Assembly (NCBI GenBank): GCA_029953675.1 | Contig: JAMWBK010000008.1 | Location: 1,798,001 to 1,862,000, forward strand | Direction: 5' to 3' | Length of the DNA: 64,000 nucleotides | Source of the DNA: Rhodosorus marinus CCMP1338 | Lineage: Eukaryota; Plantae; Rhodophyta | In this document: piece after piece, positions 30,807 to 37,726 of the stretch | How the letters are laid out: each line of letters starts with the position of its first letter | How positions within the stretch are numbered: position 1 is the stretch's first letter | Made by a program: the position numbers and the translations under genes | The notes under the pieces: model-generated | What the model saw: the letters and a program-made list of their open reading frames with translations, nothing else | What the model was told of the DNA's origin: nothing | The model's database searches: none

Positions 30807-32730
30807 CGCCTCAAACCAAACAAATAATAAAAACAGCTACACAGCGCAAGACCACCACGGCGTCCTCCACCGCACCAACCAAAAAAAACAAAAACCAGCG
30901 ACAAGAGAGGTAACACCGAAAGAAAAGAGAAAACGGCTCAATCTATACACCCTCAGAAATGTTTCATACTCCTCTCACAGACAAAACAAAACAAACCCTT
31001 CTTCCTTTTCTACAAAGGTACCTCCGTCCTACCCTTTCCCTACTCCTTATCCATCCCCACCATCCCCAATCCTTCAATTTCAAAGCTCTTATGTGACTAA
31101 TGGTCCTCCAACAAATCCTCCCAAAATAGCCCAAGAAGCCTGGGCACCGAAAGGTCAGACTATTGGGGGTTCATTTAAGCAATTTTGCTCGTTTTTTTTA
31201 ACGTCCTGTCAAGATGTTATCAAATTTTCAAGAACGATAGACCTAAAGCAACAACTTTCATACTAAGCATCGCTTTTTGCAAGAGACTTCGTCATCGTTT
31301 GTATATTTTGTATATTTTAGGGCTGTTTTGGGCGCGAATTTTTGTCGATTGGAGAGAGCACAATTGGTTCTATCGATAGTACACTTTATGTTTAATGTTA
31401 ATTCGGTAAATAATTCTTTTTATGATATTTATTTTCCGTTTTATGGGTGATGATGATTGTTATTACACAATAGGATAGTAGAGGATGGTTGGCAGGGATA
31501 GGAACACTCCGGCTTTTTTTACTAATTTACGAAAGAAAAAAGCAATCGCGGAGGGGGGACTAGGTAGGCAGTTCTTGCTTTATATTTTTAGTTTGTTTCG
31601 TGGGAATTATAGGCACCTGACCGGATTTTTACGTCGTCTCGTGGTGTGGGGGGGTGTATTCGGTGGTGCGGCAAATTTTTTTAAGGGTACTTGAGTTTTG
31701 GTATCAGGAGCCATATCGAAATATAGGAAGCGCTGAATGCTATTGAATTTGATGAATTTCTTCCTTACTTTTCAGGAAACGCAGATCACGAGGGATTCTG
31801 GTGACATAGTGATAGATCGCGTTGGTGATTTTTTTGCAATCTAATAAGGGGTGGTATGTATATATCAATTTGGATGAATATGGATGATAAAATTTCAAAT
31901 ATTAAATAATCTTCTCGAACAATACTCCGGCTACTAGCCATGTTGGGGTTTGCAAATCCAGGAAACGGGGGGAGGGCACTGACTCGTCAATCCGTCATCG
32001 GTTGGGCGCCCCTGATGTAGGAAATTAAAAACGCCCGAAAGCAATCCGTCACCGGAAACTGTGGAATGAATATCGAAAATAAATACGACTCTGTCGACCC
32101 TAAAATGGAAAATCAGAGAGCTGTCTTATTATATGGCTAAGATTTTTTTCTGAGAGAAGGGGGGCGCGGAGGGGAGGGGGTGGGTGTTTGTGTATGTGTG
32201 TCTGTGAGCTGGTTCAATCAGCATTCGCGAATTAGCTTCGTCCTATAGCTCGTCGTTATGAGTCTTTGGGGACAGTGCTTGAGTCCCTCCCCGTGGTTGC
32301 TTGAGTGCTTTAGGGGGATCAACTTGGGCGTTGCTAGCGCCCTTGAAATCTCTTCTAAGTGTTGTCTAGGGGTGGAGTTCCGCCGAGCTGCGGCATATCC
32401 CACCAGTGCCGGGTTCCTTCTGGATTTTTTTCAATTTCCTGAATCATTCATTGATTTCATAGGCTTTCGGCATTCCCGCCCCTCCCCAGCTCCCTCCCCA
32501 GCTCAACGGCCCCGAAAAAAAAGAAAAAAAAGGACAGCCTGTCCTTAGTTTTTAATAAATGAATTGTGCTAGACGTTTTGTTTTCAAATCCACGTTTCCC
32601 AGGATATCGTCCAATCACAAGTCTCGCATAAAGGGGCAAACTAAATTTAGAACTCTTATCTTTTTCATGGCTTATCTACATAAAGCTATAATTTTCAGTA
32701 ATTGTCATTTGTGTTGACGGTTCTTAATGT

Positions 32731-32806
32731 AGAAGAGTCGGAAATTTAGGATCAGCTAATTCAATCAATGTTTTGAATTAGCTGATCCTAAATTTCCGAC
32801 TCTTCT
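32731..32806. repeat. Perfect 34-bp inverted repeat with 8-nt loop
   Basis: AGAAGAGTCGGAAATTTAGGATCAGCTAATTCAA (32731-32764) is the exact reverse complement of 32773-32806. Confidence 0.95.
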
Positions 32807-32852
32807 CGTTCGAAGAAATTGTATGACAGGCTGTCTAGGAAAACTTTCTGTG

Positions 32853-33165
32853 TTTTACGTCTCAAACTGCCAGCTGGGTATTGCCTCAATTACTTCAGAT
32901 TTCCGGTTTTATTTCCCCCTAATTACTCCCTAATTAGGTAATATATCCCAATTCTATCTTGTTTTCTCCTATATCTTGCTTTTCTTTTCTTCTCTGCCCA
33001 GGTAACCTGGGAAATATCGAGTTTGCCCATCGTACTTATACTCTTGCTCCATCGGGATGTGCAATAACTATAAAGTCAAAAAGGGTGTTGCAGCTCCAGA
33101 GATTTTGGAACAGCCCTAGCATAATTTTGCATAGCCGGACATTGCTGGAAGGTGGAGACGTCACA
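32853..33165 (-). repeat. 3' LTR (313 bp)
   Basis: Direct repeat of 36532-36844, roughly 4-5% different by eye. Element-sense termini are TGTGACGTCTC...GAGACGTAAAA. Confidence 0.92.
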
Positions 33166-33373
33166 TCCCTGCCACGGAAGAAGAAGCGCGGGGTCGGGCA
33201 GATGCAGCAGCACGATGAAAGTTCATGTAGTAGCGAATTTGCCTTTTTGTAGCAGCGGTTTGTGGCAACTGATGAGCTGCAATCCATCGAGCATCAGCTA
33301 CAGTTTCACCCTCGAAGTATACCATATATTCGCTGGTTCCCTCTGGTTTCATCCGATGACCAAGTACGGATTT
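33161..33373 (-). pseudogene. Integrase C-terminal chromodomain fragment fused to a truncated gag
   Basis: IKSVLGHRMKPEGTSEYMVYFEGETVADARW fits the chromodomain pattern (ILxHR..EYLVxWxG..xW). It abuts gag sequence at 33374. Confidence 0.7.
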
Positions 33374-33784
33374 GATTCAAAGTCCGCGTAGGTTGTCGGC
33401 CGCTGGTCGTCCGCAATTAAGGTCCACCAGTACGAAGCATCGCTGACCAGGTAACATTCGGCCAAGTTTATCTTGTACGCATCGGCATCATCGGCAAGTT
33501 CCGCCAACTTGAAGTAGGTGCGGAGACTATTCAGGAACGTGCTGATAACTAAAGCATCTCGACGCCCGTCTTAGGTTTCGGGTTGGGGTGCGTGCAACTT
33601 GATCGGGGGCATGTTGGTCAGGTTCTTCTGGATTCTCGTCTCTCTCTTAAGGTCAGGTCCAGGTTTCGAAGTTTCTGGATCAGGTTTAACGGGTTTTCTG
33701 GTTGTGGGCTCATTTTCGTCAGGATCTCTGGTGGCGAATAGGGTCCTTAATCGCAAACATGCGATGAGACCAGATTTTTACGTC

Positions 33785-34462
33785 TCAAACTGCCAACTGG
33801 GTATTCAGGTTGTGTGTCAGGATGTACTTCTGTTTTTTCCGGTTCGTATTTTGGTGATTCTGGGTTATTTCCTTAAGCATACCCATTAATTGTTGCCAGA
33901 ATAGGCTGGTAAACTTCGTATCGCGATCGGAGACAATTGTTCGGGGTAGTCCCGCAAAGCGTACCCAGTTTTCGAAGAACAGTTCAGCGGTCTTGCATGG
34001 ATCTGCATCTGTCTTTGTTGGGATAAACTTTGCGTATTTCGAAAATCGGCCGACGATTATAAAAATTGCGTCGAAGCCGGATTCAGTCACCGGAAGACTG
34101 ACAATGAAGTCCATCGAGATATCTTGCAACTTTGATTCTGGTACTGGCAGAGGTTGTAAAAGCCCCTGAGCCGCCCTTAATGGTTTCTGACGCTGACATG
34201 TCTCACATTTCTGTATCAGGGACTGGACGTCATCTCGTAAGGTCCGCCAATAATATCGCCGCTTCAACAGGTTCACCCTTTTATGAAGCCCAAAATGTCC
34301 TCCCGTTGGCTCTTCCTGATGCCTCCGTAATAAATCGGGTATGAGTTTCTGGGGCACACAAACACGATGATGTTTGTACAGAATGTCCTGTTTCCTGCGA
34401 AATCCCTGCTCCGCATATTTTGCTGCTTCAGAGTAAACTGCGGTGAAATCAGGATCTTGCAA
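33785..34462 (-). pseudogene. Truncated retroviral-type integrase (HHCC and first two catalytic Asp), left arm
   Basis: H..PTGGHFG...[18 protein letters not shown] and [14 protein letters not shown]. It is cut off before the catalytic Glu and fused to LTR-like sequence. Confidence 0.9.
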
Positions 34463-34488
34463 GTAAGCTTCTGACCAGTCTTCGGAGG

Positions 34489-35240
34489 GCGAGATATGTA
34501 AATCGCTTATTGCCGTTTTCCTTTGACATCGAGTACCAGAAGGGAACAGAAAATATCGCGGATCCTCTCAGTCGAGGCGCGATCAACCAGATGGCGATCT
34601 CCAGTATCTTGCCCTACGAAGATTGGTCAGAAGATTGGTCAGAAGCTTACTTGCAAGATCCTGATTTCACCGCAGTTTACTCTGAAGCAGCAAAATATGC
34701 GGAGCAGGGATTTCGCAGGAAACAGGACATTCTCTACAAACATCATCGTGTTTGTGTGCCCCAGAAACTCGTACCCGATTTATTACGGAGGCATCACGAA
34801 GAGCCAACGGGAGGACATTTTGGGCTTCATAAAACGGTGAACCTGTTGAAGCGGCGAAATTATTGGCGGACCTTACGAGATGACGTCCAAGTCCCTGATA
34901 CAGAAATGTGAGACATGTCAGCGTCAGAAACCATTAAGGGCGGCTCAGGGGCTTTTACAACCTCTGCCAGTACCAGAATCAAAGTTGCAAGATATCTCGA
35001 TGGACTTCATTGTCAGTCTTCCGTTGACTGAATCCGGCTTCGACGCAATTTTCATAGTCGTCGACCGATTTTCGAAATACGCAAAGTTTATCCCAACAAA
35101 GACAGTGCAGATCCATGCAAGACCGCTGAACTGTTCTTCGAAAACTGGGTACGCTTTGCGGGACTACCCCGAACAATTGTCTCCGATCGCGATACGAAGT
35201 TTACCAGCCTATTCTGGCAACAATTAATGGGTATGCTTAA
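34489..35240 (+). pseudogene. RNase H C-terminus plus frameshifted integrase, spacer and right arm
   Basis: ARYVNRLLPFSFDIEYQKGTENIADPLSR, then integrase split over ORFs 34510-34911 and 34880-35227 by 1-bp indels. Confidence 0.88.
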
Positions 35241-35356
35241 GGAAATAACCAAGAATCACCAAAATACGAACCGGAAAAAACAGAAGTACATCCTGACACA
35301 CAACCTGAATACCCAGCTGGCAGTTTGAGACGTAAAAATCTGGTCTCATCGCATGT

Positions 35357-36110
35357 TTGCGATTAAGGACCCTATTCGCCACCAGAGATCCTGACGAAAA
35401 TGAGCCCACAACCAGAAAACCCGTTAAACCTGATCCAGAAACTTCGAAACCTGAACCTGACCTTAAGAGAGAGACGAGAATCCAGAAGAACCTGACCAAC
35501 ATGACCCCGATCAAGTTGCACGCACCCCAACCCAAAACCTACGACGGGCGCCGAGATGCTCTAGTTATCAGCACGTTCCTGAATAGTCTCCGCACCTACT
35601 TCAAGTTGGCGGAACTTGCCGATGATGCCAATGCGTACATTGATAAACTTGGCCGAAGGTTACCTGGTCAGCGATGCTTCGTACTGGTGGTCCTTAATTG
35701 CGGACGACAAGCGGCCGACAACCTACGCGGACTTTGAATCTACGTTGAGGGCGCAATTTTACCCCGCCGACGCTACGATACGAGCAAACAACAACTTGCG
35801 AATGCGAAGCAGAAAACCACGGTGGCCGCTTACTCAGGGTATTTTAACAAGTGCCTCATTCAAGTCGGTGCAATTTCGGACTCGGAGAAATCCGACCGGT
35901 TCGTTGAAGGGCTAAAGCCTGAGATAAGGAAATATATCTATATTCACGATATTTCCACATTCGAGGGAGCCCAGGCTCTCACCCTGAAAATTGAAGGCGC
36001 TGAGATGCCTACCCAGCCCCATCGAGTTAACGAGAAGTTTTCAACTGAGAAATCTACCTTCCCACTACGTCAACCTGCTATATATATGGAATTTGACCAT
36101 GTTGATAAGG
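35357..36110 (+). pseudogene. Ty3/Gypsy gag, frameshifted
   Basis: PKTYDGRRD, YLVSDASYWW, TYADFESTLRAQFYP and EKSDRFVEGLKPEIR across three frames. Confidence 0.85.
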
Positions 36111-36531
36111 TGGTTACGAACGGGGAGGGGGGGGAAGGGGGTAGTTTAGGCGTGGCCCTGCTTTCTCTGCCCTTGTGGGGGTTATGGTGAGCTTTTGATG
36201 GAGTGACTGAGGGTTTATGAGCTTTTGACCATTTTGGTTCGGATGAGGTGGAACTAGTGGAGCCCTGACCACTATGGCAAAAAGAAAAGGAGGGCGCTTA
36301 CCATGGCGAGAGAGTTGCGCGTGGTGGGTGATGACGTAATCGTAACCCCCGATGTTTTCGATCCCGAGTACTAATGTGAATGAGGTAGGAGACTTGGCAT
36401 TCACGGATGGCGAGACAGCTGGCAGACTGATGATCACGAGACGTGCAGGATATATTAGACACGAGATGTGCAGGATTTATGTGGCGCGAGATTTGCAGGA
36501 AACATGACACAAGATGGCGATGAGACCAGAT

Positions 36532-36844
36532 TTTTACGTCTCAAACTGCCAGCTGGGTATTGCCTCAATTACTCCAGATTTCCGGTTTTATTTCCCCCTA
36601 ATTACTCCCTAATTAGGTAATATATCCCAATTCTATCTTGTTTTCTCCTATATCTTCCTTTTCTTTTTTTCTCTCTCCAGCTAACCTGGGAAATATCGAC
36701 CTTGCCCATCGTACTTATACTCTTGCTCCATCGGGATGTGCAATAACTATTAGGATCAAAAGGGTGTTGCAACTCCAGAGATTTTGGCGCAGCCCTAGCA
36801 TAATTTTGCATAGCCGGACATTGCTGGAAGGTGGAGACGTCACA
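36532..36844 (-). repeat. 5' LTR (313 bp), followed in element sense by PBS-like 36517-36528
   Basis: Direct repeat of 32853-33165, with TGGTCTCATCGC 3 nt downstream on the minus strand. Confidence 0.92.
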
Positions 36845-37726
36845 CTGTGCAGGTGATTGACCGTCCTTGAGGAAGGTGATAGGTGAATGAATGCGTTTTG
36901 GGTGGGAGCTTTTGGTGGCGTGTAGATTAGACAAGGTTTATAGACCAGGCAATACTTGTCATGGGGTGGATGAACGCATGTTGGAAGCTCGACTGACTGA
37001 AAGCAGTGAAGATTTGAGTAAAGGACAGCTTTCCACTCTGGTTGGAGATTGTTTTGTTTTGAAAAGCAACGATCGCTTTCCCGTTAGTATTTTAATGGAG
37101 GTCATCACACTCTGTATTATTAGATCTAGTAGAGTAGAGGTATGGGAACGGTTAGGTCTAAACAATCCTACCCACAATAATATTCGAGTACACTCAGCTC
37201 TCTGGAGGTTTGTTCGGTCCTGAACCTTCATCGGTGTTGAGAAGTATACCTCAACGCAGCTTCGCTCAAGAGTCAGTACTGAGCGTGTCAAGAATTGCGT
37301 TCCAAGAGGATAGTTCGACGAGACAAGCCATTACCTCAAGCTCGGCGCGATCAATTGATCAACGCCTGTAAATGGTAGTCCTTCATAAGGTTGCGCCCAC
37401 CGTCCTTTGTGTTGACCTGGTTTCTAGTATCCGCCGTGAGATGAATGCCATCGATTGATCTCAGAAAGGGATTTTCAACAACGCTGAGGATGACAGATGC
37501 GACGGGAGGGACGACGTCTGCAGAGGGAACGTGTTGATCTTTTTTCAGTTGCGGTCAGGTGGGTTACTCCACCTTCGCTAGATATTTCAGCGCGAAGGGA
37601 TCATCCGCTCCGCGCTGCTTTGTTCTTTGTTTCTGTTTTCGCTGGAAAAGATGTCTTGAGTAGGACGACTCTCGTGGATCGCTCTGGGCGGCTTGGCTTC
37701 TGTTTTCTCATTTCTTCTTCGGAAGG

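Follow-up and report, generated by a model that had tools for sequence, protein, structure and literature searches.

A dead, internally scrambled LTR retrotransposon with a 1.1-kb inverted duplication in the red alga Rhodosorus marinus

The 64,000-nucleotide stretch of DNA analyzed here (the window) belongs to the nuclear DNA of Rhodosorus marinus CCMP1338 (GCA_029953675.1, contig JAMWBK010000008.1). The source locus, L002, matches the window at 100% identity, and the MatE protein encoded beside the element is 100% identical to R. marinus NDN08_006389. The assembly was built from ONT reads with NextDenovo, and RNA-seq exists for the same strain (PMC10250338). The genome as a whole is compact, at 31 Mb with 15% repeats. 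In an intergenic region, inside a 2.1-Mb contig and between unique flanks, lies one insertion of 3,992 bp (positions 32853 to 36844), bounded by a 5-bp target duplication and left without a gene model in the assembly record (Table 1).

The insertion is framed by two LTRs of 313 nt each that are 94.9% identical by blastn, with CTGTG on both sides, in agreement with an earlier note on this DNA that had described an LTR pair with a target duplication. The outer LTRs, and with them the element, read in the minus-strand sense; the left arm of the inverted duplication between them is therefore sense, and the right arm antisense, to the outer LTRs. Both full LTRs contain a TATA-like AAATAAAA, about 25 to 32 nt upstream of the point at which the LTR-tail identity found inside the element starts. 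Ahead of the 3' LTR, the sole candidate for a polypurine tract is a purine run that is short and weak. The window yielded no candidate for the primer tRNA: a tRNA scan detected no tRNA genes in it, and an Rfam scan was also empty.

Table 1. Features of the R. marinus element, in window coordinates
Feature	Positions	Strand	Basis
Target-site duplication, left copy (CTGTG)	32848-32852		Same 5-mer at 36845-36849
3' LTR	32853-33165	-	Direct repeat of 36532-36844; orientation from PBS/gag order in the arms and the adjoining chromodomain remnant
Short purine-rich (weak PPT-like) stretch and putative integrase C-terminal chromodomain remnant	33166-33373	-	Weak alignment of relatives' Chromo domains
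Left arm: integrase fragment, last 30 nt of LTR plus PBS (33761-33805), leader, gag N-terminal fragment	33374-34496	-	Repeat search, blastn, local alignment
Spacer, single copy, 109 nt; RNase H-end/integrase linker	34497-34605	+	In frame with right arm; covered by full-length relatives (tblastn)
Right arm: content as left arm; LTR tail plus PBS at 35308-35352	34606-35740	+	Repeat search, blastn, local alignment
Right gag fragment, continued past the arm	35741-36020	+	tblastn of relatives' N-termini to ~36001; weak Pfam Retrotrans_gag and Ty3_capsid; tblastx to L001
~500 nt between truncated gag and 5'-LTR PBS	36021-36516		25-nt x 3.1 tandem repeat at 36435-36511 (TRF)
PBS-like sequence beside 5' LTR	36517-36529	-	TGG start, three bases past LTR end; same 13-15 nt after LTR tail, before gag, in both arms
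5' LTR	36532-36844	-	Direct repeat of 32853-33165
Target-site duplication, right copy (CTGTG)	36845-36849		Read from sequence

Each arm contains integrase, LTR tail, PBS, and gag sequence, as had been read from the DNA before. The integrase zinc-binding domain is recognized in the arms (Pfam PF17921, E = 1.4e-17) alongside a weak rve match; in the left arm, the integrase fragment is a single 225-codon ORF that carries PF17921 at this same E value. Across the 45 nt of LTR tail and PBS, the right arm is identical to the outer 5' LTR/PBS junction at 45/45 positions and the left arm at 44/45. In the arms, the match to the LTR sets in sharply at a point 30 nt short of the LTR end, whereas integrase homology stops about 20 nt before this tail. 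The gag N-terminus in the arms is 71 to 76% identical at the protein level to a Rhodosorus gag protein (the left fragment is 71% identical to P0001).

Breaks in the coding fragments were counted. The left integrase fragment has no stops and no frameshifts and is truncated at both ends, and its right counterpart is truncated with two frameshifts and one in-frame insertion. The left gag fragment is truncated with one stop, and the right gag, truncated with two frameshifts, ends before any zinc knuckle or protease. The roughly 500 nt that follow it show no similarity within the window or to relatives. A tblastn search with six full-length or gag relatives found no match to protease or reverse transcriptase anywhere in the window, and of RNase H the tail alone is present.

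The terminal direct repeats and the short target-site duplication are those of a Ty3/gypsy element, but instead of gag and a protease-reverse transcriptase-RNase H-integrase series in order, the body holds integrase and gag fragments only. Because the full pol order is absent, the element is a deletion derivative rather than an autonomous member. The closest full-length relatives are chromoviruses of green algae and plants (among them P0050, P0020, P0054, and P0029), which share the integrase zinc-binding domain and core with it at 40 to 46% identity and carry protease, reverse transcriptase, RNase H, integrase, SH3, and Chromo domains. Like these, the Rhodosorus element has LTR-type traits (LTRs, a 5-bp target duplication, and a PBS-like sequence starting with TGG); unlike them, it lacks protease, reverse transcriptase, the C-terminus of integrase, and the greater part of both RNase H and the chromodomain, and its body is permuted and partly inverted. 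The Chromo domains of P0050 and P0020 align weakly, at 27 to 35% identity, with 33376-33250 on the minus strand, where the Pfam Chromo model scores nothing. The element is thus a dead, non-autonomous, internally scrambled LTR retrotransposon of the Ty3/gypsy type, chromovirus-like in character, and the alignments make the chromovirus label itself plausible.

No sibling element was found in the window, either by blastn of 32701-37000 or by tblastn with full-length relatives, and the same blastn query against the whole window found no third copy of the arm sequence. With the integrase ORF, an exhaustive HMMER search gave best matches of 40 to 49% identity from Haematococcus, Chara, and Closterium, and a word-indexed search gave identities of at most 50%; among 15 billion proteins, the best integrase relatives are 40 to 50% identical and belong to green algae and plants. 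No relative more than 50% identical was found in the searches made. A word-indexed protein search with the gag N-terminus returned a transcript from another R. marinus strain as its sole match. Two metagenome scans, one for gag peptide patterns and one for the exact LTR-tail/PBS 24-mer, were both empty. The transcriptome of another R. marinus strain contains a related, rearranged gag sequence (L001).

The inverted duplication in the body of the element is real. In a local alignment, the two arms match over 1109 columns at 97.9% identity, with 23 mismatches and, in addition, three one-base indels; chance comes nowhere near producing a repeat of 1.1 kb at 98% identity. Repeat search and blastn delimit the arm core as 33374-34486 versus 34627-35740. 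By eye, the homology extends inward to 34496 and 34606, although mismatches are denser in this extension and one of the arms has a 12-nt tandem duplication that the other lacks. Overall, the arms differ by 23 to 25 substitutions, three one-base indels, and the 12-nt indel. A single-copy spacer does separate them, as the earlier note had said, although its length is 109 nt and not 108. An ORF at 34510-34911 starts in this spacer and continues into the right arm. Further, all of the left arm is contained in the right unit, which overruns it at both ends. Since the spacer continues the reading frame of the right arm and the left arm adds nothing to the right unit, the left arm is the fold-back copy and the right unit the original.

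Comparison of the two repeat pairs bears on their relative ages. The arms have a K2P distance of 0.021 (23 differences in 1109 columns), whereas the LTR pair has a K2P distance of 0.056 (17 differences in 314 columns of a global alignment). Divergence is 2.5-fold higher between the LTRs than between the arms (Fisher p = 0.009 for 16/313 versus 23/1109, with the LTR count taken from the 94.9% blastn identity and not from the global alignment). Because the LTRs are the more diverged, the duplication is probably younger than the integration, and this order argues against a palindrome formed in a transposition intermediate. The suggestion that the retroelement might be mobilizable is accordingly unsupported, because the divergence points to a rearrangement after integration and not to a palindrome borne by a transposing element. 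The order is not secure, because gene conversion between the arms of a palindrome would lower their divergence. Between the arms, 4 coding changes are synonymous and 13 are non-synonymous, and CpG observed/expected in the arms is about 1.0, i.e., there is no CpG depletion; the arms appear to drift neutrally.

How might this structure have formed? In the account that we favor and hold to be probable, a dead, scrambled copy produced by a template jump later acquired the fold-back as a by-product, which has since drifted neutrally, with no function shown. In the earlier state, the body would have contained a permuted unit: the end of RNase H, with the N-terminus and core of integrase, would have run directly into the final 30 nt of the LTR, followed by the PBS, the leader, and gag. 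We infer that the integrase/LTR-tail junction was made when reverse transcriptase jumped between templates at the 5' end of the element RNA. This junction may mark an RNA 5' end, but a deletion at the DNA level, in a tandem or circular form, would yield the same junction. Autointegration was rejected as its source, given that the junction lies 30 nt inside the LTR and not at its terminus. A splice-mediated origin of the gag/chromodomain junction was likewise rejected, as the boundary has no GT donor.

The fold-back would have come later, most likely when the element was already integrated. A DNA strand under synthesis (the minus strand of the window) would have turned back on itself, used 1.12 kb of its own sequence as template, and rejoined where the chromodomain starts, giving the left arm as an inverted partial copy of the right-hand unit. 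The earlier note had placed an imperfect inverted microhomology at the turn, but the 17-mers it quoted turn out to be the diverged inner ends of the arms rather than an independent microhomology. At the true junction (34496/34497 versus 34605/34606), no microhomology was seen by inspection, which counts against the fold-back mechanism in that it leaves topology as the sole argument for it. The result would be a structural by-product that has been drifting neutrally since, and the structure is of an ordinary kind among transposon rearrangements.

Alternatively, the palindrome might date from reverse transcription: the enzyme would have switched to the nascent DNA strand as its template, and the integrating cDNA would have brought the palindrome with it, its arms being homogenized afterward by gene conversion. 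We regard this as rather unlikely. In its favor, other template-jump-like junctions occur in the body, where the integrase core meets an LTR tail without U3 and the gag N-terminus meets the chromodomain start. The breakpoints of L001 fall within a few bases of the gag position at the outer arm end, which would fit a family-wide polymerase pause site; the family might even fold back repeatedly at one gag position. L001 may, however, be a transcriptome-assembly chimera, a 1.1-kb hairpin in a template or intermediate would hamper completion of the cDNA, and the excess divergence of the LTRs over the arms runs against a shared time of origin. An artifact of Nanopore assembly, in which a fold-back chimeric read was built into the consensus, must also be weighed, since such chimeras do occur in ONT libraries and it was from ONT reads that NextDenovo built this assembly (PMC10250338). 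The substitutions and indels that separate the arms argue against it, as the earlier note had correctly reasoned from their divergence. The spacer is also element coding sequence and not adapter, and the palindrome sits inside the contig between unique flanks and a matching target duplication, with outer junctions that differ from each other. An artifact is accordingly very improbable. We rate slightly lower still the chance that two copies inserted head to head, nested or adjacent, and then suffered deletions. Nested insertion is frequent among LTR elements, but here the aberrant integrase/LTR-tail junction of one arm recurs in the other, and the left arm has nothing beyond the right unit; with a single LTR pair, a single target duplication, and no second set of LTR ends found, we reject a head-to-head double insertion.

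A separate question is whether the fold-back, however it arose, acts as an RNA silencer. Minimum free energy (MFE) predictions for the two strands give -2253 and -2226 kcal/mol, with 1104 arm-to-arm pairs and 17 perfect stem runs of at least 21 nt that cover 1006 nt. A transcript of either strand is thus predicted to fold into a stem of about 1.1 kb, as had been proposed, and the duplication is long enough and its arms similar enough for double-stranded RNA of the Mu killer type. Should the 5' LTR, which lies in the minus sense, still act as a promoter, a transcript from it would include both arms and form a hairpin of about 1,100 bp that a Dicer could process.

From this potential, one may construct a functional hairpin-RNA silencer of the Mu killer type: an LTR transcript would fold and be diced, small RNAs would silence integrase and gag relatives in trans, and the host would have retained the locus for that reason. 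The long, nearly perfect stem on either strand is consistent with this idea, as is the position of the arms between an LTR bearing the TATA-like motif and a second LTR, which would let one transcript span both. Loss of Dicer-like and Argonaute proteins is specific to the Cyanidiophyceae, implying retention in other red algae (PMC9812998), and Dicer-like and Argonaute genes have been described in a red seaweed (PMC12026948); our literature search found nothing linking Rhodosorus with Argonaute. Precedents exist in Mu killer, as cited in PMC2725412, and in endogenous pararetroviruses whose inverted insertions supply siRNA pathways (PMC9868043), and a related rearranged gag is present in the transcriptome of another strain. 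Against the silencer, no target family was detected in the window, in protein collections above 50% identity, or in the metagenome scans; the best integrase matches, at 40 to 50% among 15 billion proteins, come from other phyla, and the window holds no sibling. The arms drift in an apparently neutral manner with no footprint of CpG depletion, and a single dead copy is equally predicted by chance rearrangement. On balance, the silencer would be a minority possibility, and we think it improbable that this host-retained role explains the locus. It is just as doubtful that the locus is a working, LTR-driven source of hairpin RNA from which dicing yields small RNAs directed at the family's integrase, gag, and PBS sequences. 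Absence of a demonstrated function is not evidence against function.

Known systems show how far the likeness extends. Mu killer of maize, in which a MuDR transposon with a partial deletion has been duplicated in inverted orientation (Slotkin et al. 2005, as cited in PMC2725412 and PMC9868043), is, in these secondary accounts, also a natural inverted duplication of part of a transposable element with a potential long hairpin matching the element's own genes. As described there, it derives from a DNA transposon, uses a flanking promoter, makes small RNAs, and heritably silences active MuDR, whereas here the parent is a red-algal LTR retrotransposon, its own LTR is the sole promoter candidate, and transcription, small RNAs, a target family, and silencing are all hypothetical. 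The inverted-repeat endogenous pararetrovirus integrations of tomato (PMC9868043) are similarly dead and rearranged; parts of their own coding sequence are repeated in inverted orientation on a micro scale, with variably diverged arms. For those loci, which lack LTR integration, siRNAs have been mapped and expression and methylation data exist, in contrast to an element known from sequence alone. The LTR palindromes of maize Sireviruses (PMC4728375) are also LTR retrotransposon sequences with hairpin potential that have been discussed as a source of siRNA, but they are short, lie in the LTR cis-region, and occur family-wide, unlike the 1.1-kb, single-copy coding duplication in Rhodosorus.

A long inverted repeat in a transposon is by itself no evidence of a silencing function, and what the locus mainly documents is the scrambling of a defective LTR element, with a permuted integrase/LTR-tail/gag junction and a fold-back duplication that was probably added later. 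The small-RNA biology of red algae is barely described. If the hairpin were expressed and diced, the locus would offer a natural way into the study of how these organisms silence transposons through RNA, and no hairpin silencer derived from a transposon would have been described in Rhodophyta before it.

The 3,992-bp LTR element of Ty3/gypsy (chromovirus-like) type at 32853-36844 lies within a segment (window 15687-37564) that is 100% identical to the CCMP1338 assembly (GCA_029953675.1; JAMWBK010000008.1, a 2.1-Mb contig), and a neighboring MatE gene fragment matches R. marinus protein NDN08_006389 at 100% identity. The nuclear assembly (31.2 Mb, 15% repeats, 8,392 genes) was produced from ONT reads with NextDenovo, and RNA-seq has been published for the strain (PMC10250338). 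The deposited annotation has no gene models within the element; the closest is about 2 kb to its left, and the rest of the window contains ordinary eukaryotic genes, with no tRNA genes and no Rfam families found in the window. To the left of the insertion are two short perfect tandem repeats at 32480-32532, about 300 nt away (a 12-nt unit and an A-rich 9-nt unit, each x 2.1), and a 76-nt hairpin-forming inverted repeat at 32731-32806, 41 nt from the target duplication. The latter has two perfect 28-nt arms (32735-32762 and 32775-32802), is unique in the window and could be a small foldback or MITE remnant, or a terminator-like structure.

The LTR pair and target duplication reported in the earlier note are borne out (see table), as is the content of the arms. 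In one reading direction, both arms carry the integrase N terminus and core (Pfam PF17921, E = 1.4e-17, with a weak rve match), an LTR tail corresponding to the final 30 nt of the LTR, a PBS-like sequence of 13-15 nt starting with TGG, a leader, and a gag N terminus. The gag part matches, at 71-76% identity, a gag protein in the MMETSP transcriptome of a different R. marinus strain. Because gag must come after the LTR and PBS, the LTR sense is fixed: both outer LTRs read along the minus strand, which places the 5' LTR at the right. Observed/expected CpG is 0.53-0.59 in both LTRs versus about 0.9-1.0 in the arms and flanks, a difference that may be noise in such short sequences.

Features of the element, with positions in the window
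Feature	Position	Strand	Size or lesions	Remarks
LTR pair	32853-33165 and 36532-36844		313 nt each	94.9% identical (blastn)
Target duplication CTGTG	32848-32852 and 36845-36849			directly flanking the LTRs; direct reading
Left arm	33374-34496			
Spacer	34497-34605		109 nt	single-copy, between the arms
Right arm	34606-35740			
Unmatched stretch	36021-36516		~500 nt	from truncated gag to 5' PBS
Tandem repeat	36435-36511		25-nt unit x 3.1	immediately inside the 5'-LTR PBS, within the unmatched stretch
PBS of 5' LTR	36517-36529	minus		
Left-arm integrase			0 stops, 0 frameshifts	truncated at both ends
Right-hand integrase			0 stops, 2 frameshifts, 1 in-frame insertion	truncated at both ends
Left-arm gag			1 stop, 0 frameshifts	truncated
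Right-hand gag			0 stops (counted within the arm), 2 frameshifts	truncated before any zinc knuckle

The inverted duplication within the element is real. A repeat search paired 33374-34486 with 34627-35740 by collinear inverted blocks at 97-98% complementarity, blastn recovered the same palindrome, and local alignment of the arms gave 97.9% identity over 1109 columns, with 23 mismatches plus three one-base indels. Read directly, the homology extends to 34496 and 34606, with denser mismatches in these inner ends and, within them, a 12-nt tandem duplication in one arm alone. The imperfect microhomology previously proposed at the turn does not hold, as both of its 17-mers are the inner arm ends; no shared bases were seen at the true junctions on direct reading. 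An ONT fold-back chimera is an unlikely source of the palindrome: the arms are separated by over 20 substitutions and by several indels, upholding the earlier argument from divergence, the spacer is coding sequence of the element, the outer junctions are unlike each other, and the 2.1-Mb contig encloses the whole structure, whose target duplications match.

Read on the plus strand, the spacer codes for the linker between the RNase H end and integrase and shares the right arm's reading frame. The right unit (the right arm plus its extensions) outreaches the left arm at both ends, by 109 nt upstream and about 280 nt more gag, which makes the left arm an incomplete copy of it. This topology fits fold-back copying of a nascent strand (the window's minus strand). 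Such a strand would first have copied the right unit, then turned back upon itself at 34606, copied 1.12 kb a second time and finally switched at 33374/33373 to the chromodomain start. The opposite copy direction is excluded, because a left-arm self-copy could hold neither the spacer nor the extra gag. LTRs are identical when an element integrates. Here, the pair differs at 17 of 314 columns (K2P 0.056) and the arms at 23 of 1109 (K2P 0.021; Fisher test on 16/313 versus 23/1109, p = 0.009). Since the LTRs are now more diverged than the arms, at face value the duplication would be younger than the insertion and would have arisen by rearrangement of the chromosome, not in a transposition intermediate. 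Gene conversion between the palindrome arms would mimic this younger-arms pattern.

The integrase/LTR-tail junction makes the content of the arms a permuted unit and would be a separate rearrangement. Integrase homology, traced by tblastn with full-length chromovirus proteins from green algae and plants, ends about 20 nt ahead of the internal LTR tail, whose LTR identity starts abruptly 30 nt from the LTR end, U3 being absent. The full LTRs carry a TATA-like AAATAAAA motif some 25-32 nt upstream of this start point. We infer that the internal tail may be R-U5; reverse transcriptase may then have created the junction by leaving one RNA at its 5' end and resuming in the integrase region of a second. 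Alternatively, a tandem or circular form may have undergone a deletion at the DNA level. A related element is represented by a transcript from another R. marinus strain (L001 1-1115; MMETSP, JGI 3300017118), with gag at about 70% nucleotide and 71-76% amino acid identity. It is scrambled, with a 40-nt zero-spacer palindrome at 96-175, a sense gag N terminus at 194-437 and later parts of gag antisense at 438-773, and one of its breakpoints is no more than about 4 nt from the point in gag where the window's arm ends. This coincidence could mark a family-wide polymerase-switching (rearrangement) hot spot, or the scrambling could be a transcriptome-assembly (Trinity) chimera.

Judged from its sequence, the element is a dead, non-autonomous derivative. 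The same protein queries gave no protease or reverse transcriptase signal anywhere in the window. The unmatched stretch resembles nothing else in the element, in the window or among these relatives and could be captured sequence or a family-specific leader; it contains a G-rich run (36122-36141), and its 25-nt repeat is missing from the leader after the PBS copies in the arms. The relatives carry protease, RT, RNase H, integrase, SH3 and Chromo domains and are therefore chromoviruses. A minus-strand remnant adjoining the left (3') LTR aligns weakly to their Chromo domains but receives no score from Pfam, leaving the chromovirus label no more than plausible.

As claimed in the earlier note, a transcript of either strand is predicted to form a long dsRNA stem: the LTR-sense strand folds with an MFE of -2253 kcal/mol and forms 1104 base pairs between the arms, of which 1006 nt fall in 17 perfect runs of 21 nt or longer. 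A transcript begun in the right-hand LTR would include both arms. The proposed silencing has no support beyond this folding potential. No sibling or autonomous copies were found in the window (blastn; tblastn with the relatives). The best matches to the integrase ORF in an exhaustive protein search were 40-49% identical (Haematococcus, Chara and Closterium), a word-indexed search gave at most 50% identity, and metagenome scans with gag peptide patterns and an exact LTR-tail/PBS 24-mer were empty. Changes between the arms (4 synonymous, 13 non-synonymous) look neutral, and the arms lack a methylation footprint, because their observed/expected CpG is about 1.0. Dicer-like and Argonaute genes were lost specifically in Cyanidiophyceae (PMC9812998; PMC12770821) and have been described in a red seaweed (PMC12026948); we found no literature linking Rhodosorus with Argonaute.

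Set against the class of hairpin silencers, the element appears to share the structure only, the other hallmarks of that class being transcription, small RNAs, a target family and silencing. Its structure works like Mu killer raw material (cited in PMC2725412), and it resembles the tomato inverted endogenous pararetrovirus loci that feed siRNA pathways (PMC9868043). The element is a transposon with an inverted self-duplication, a kind already known.
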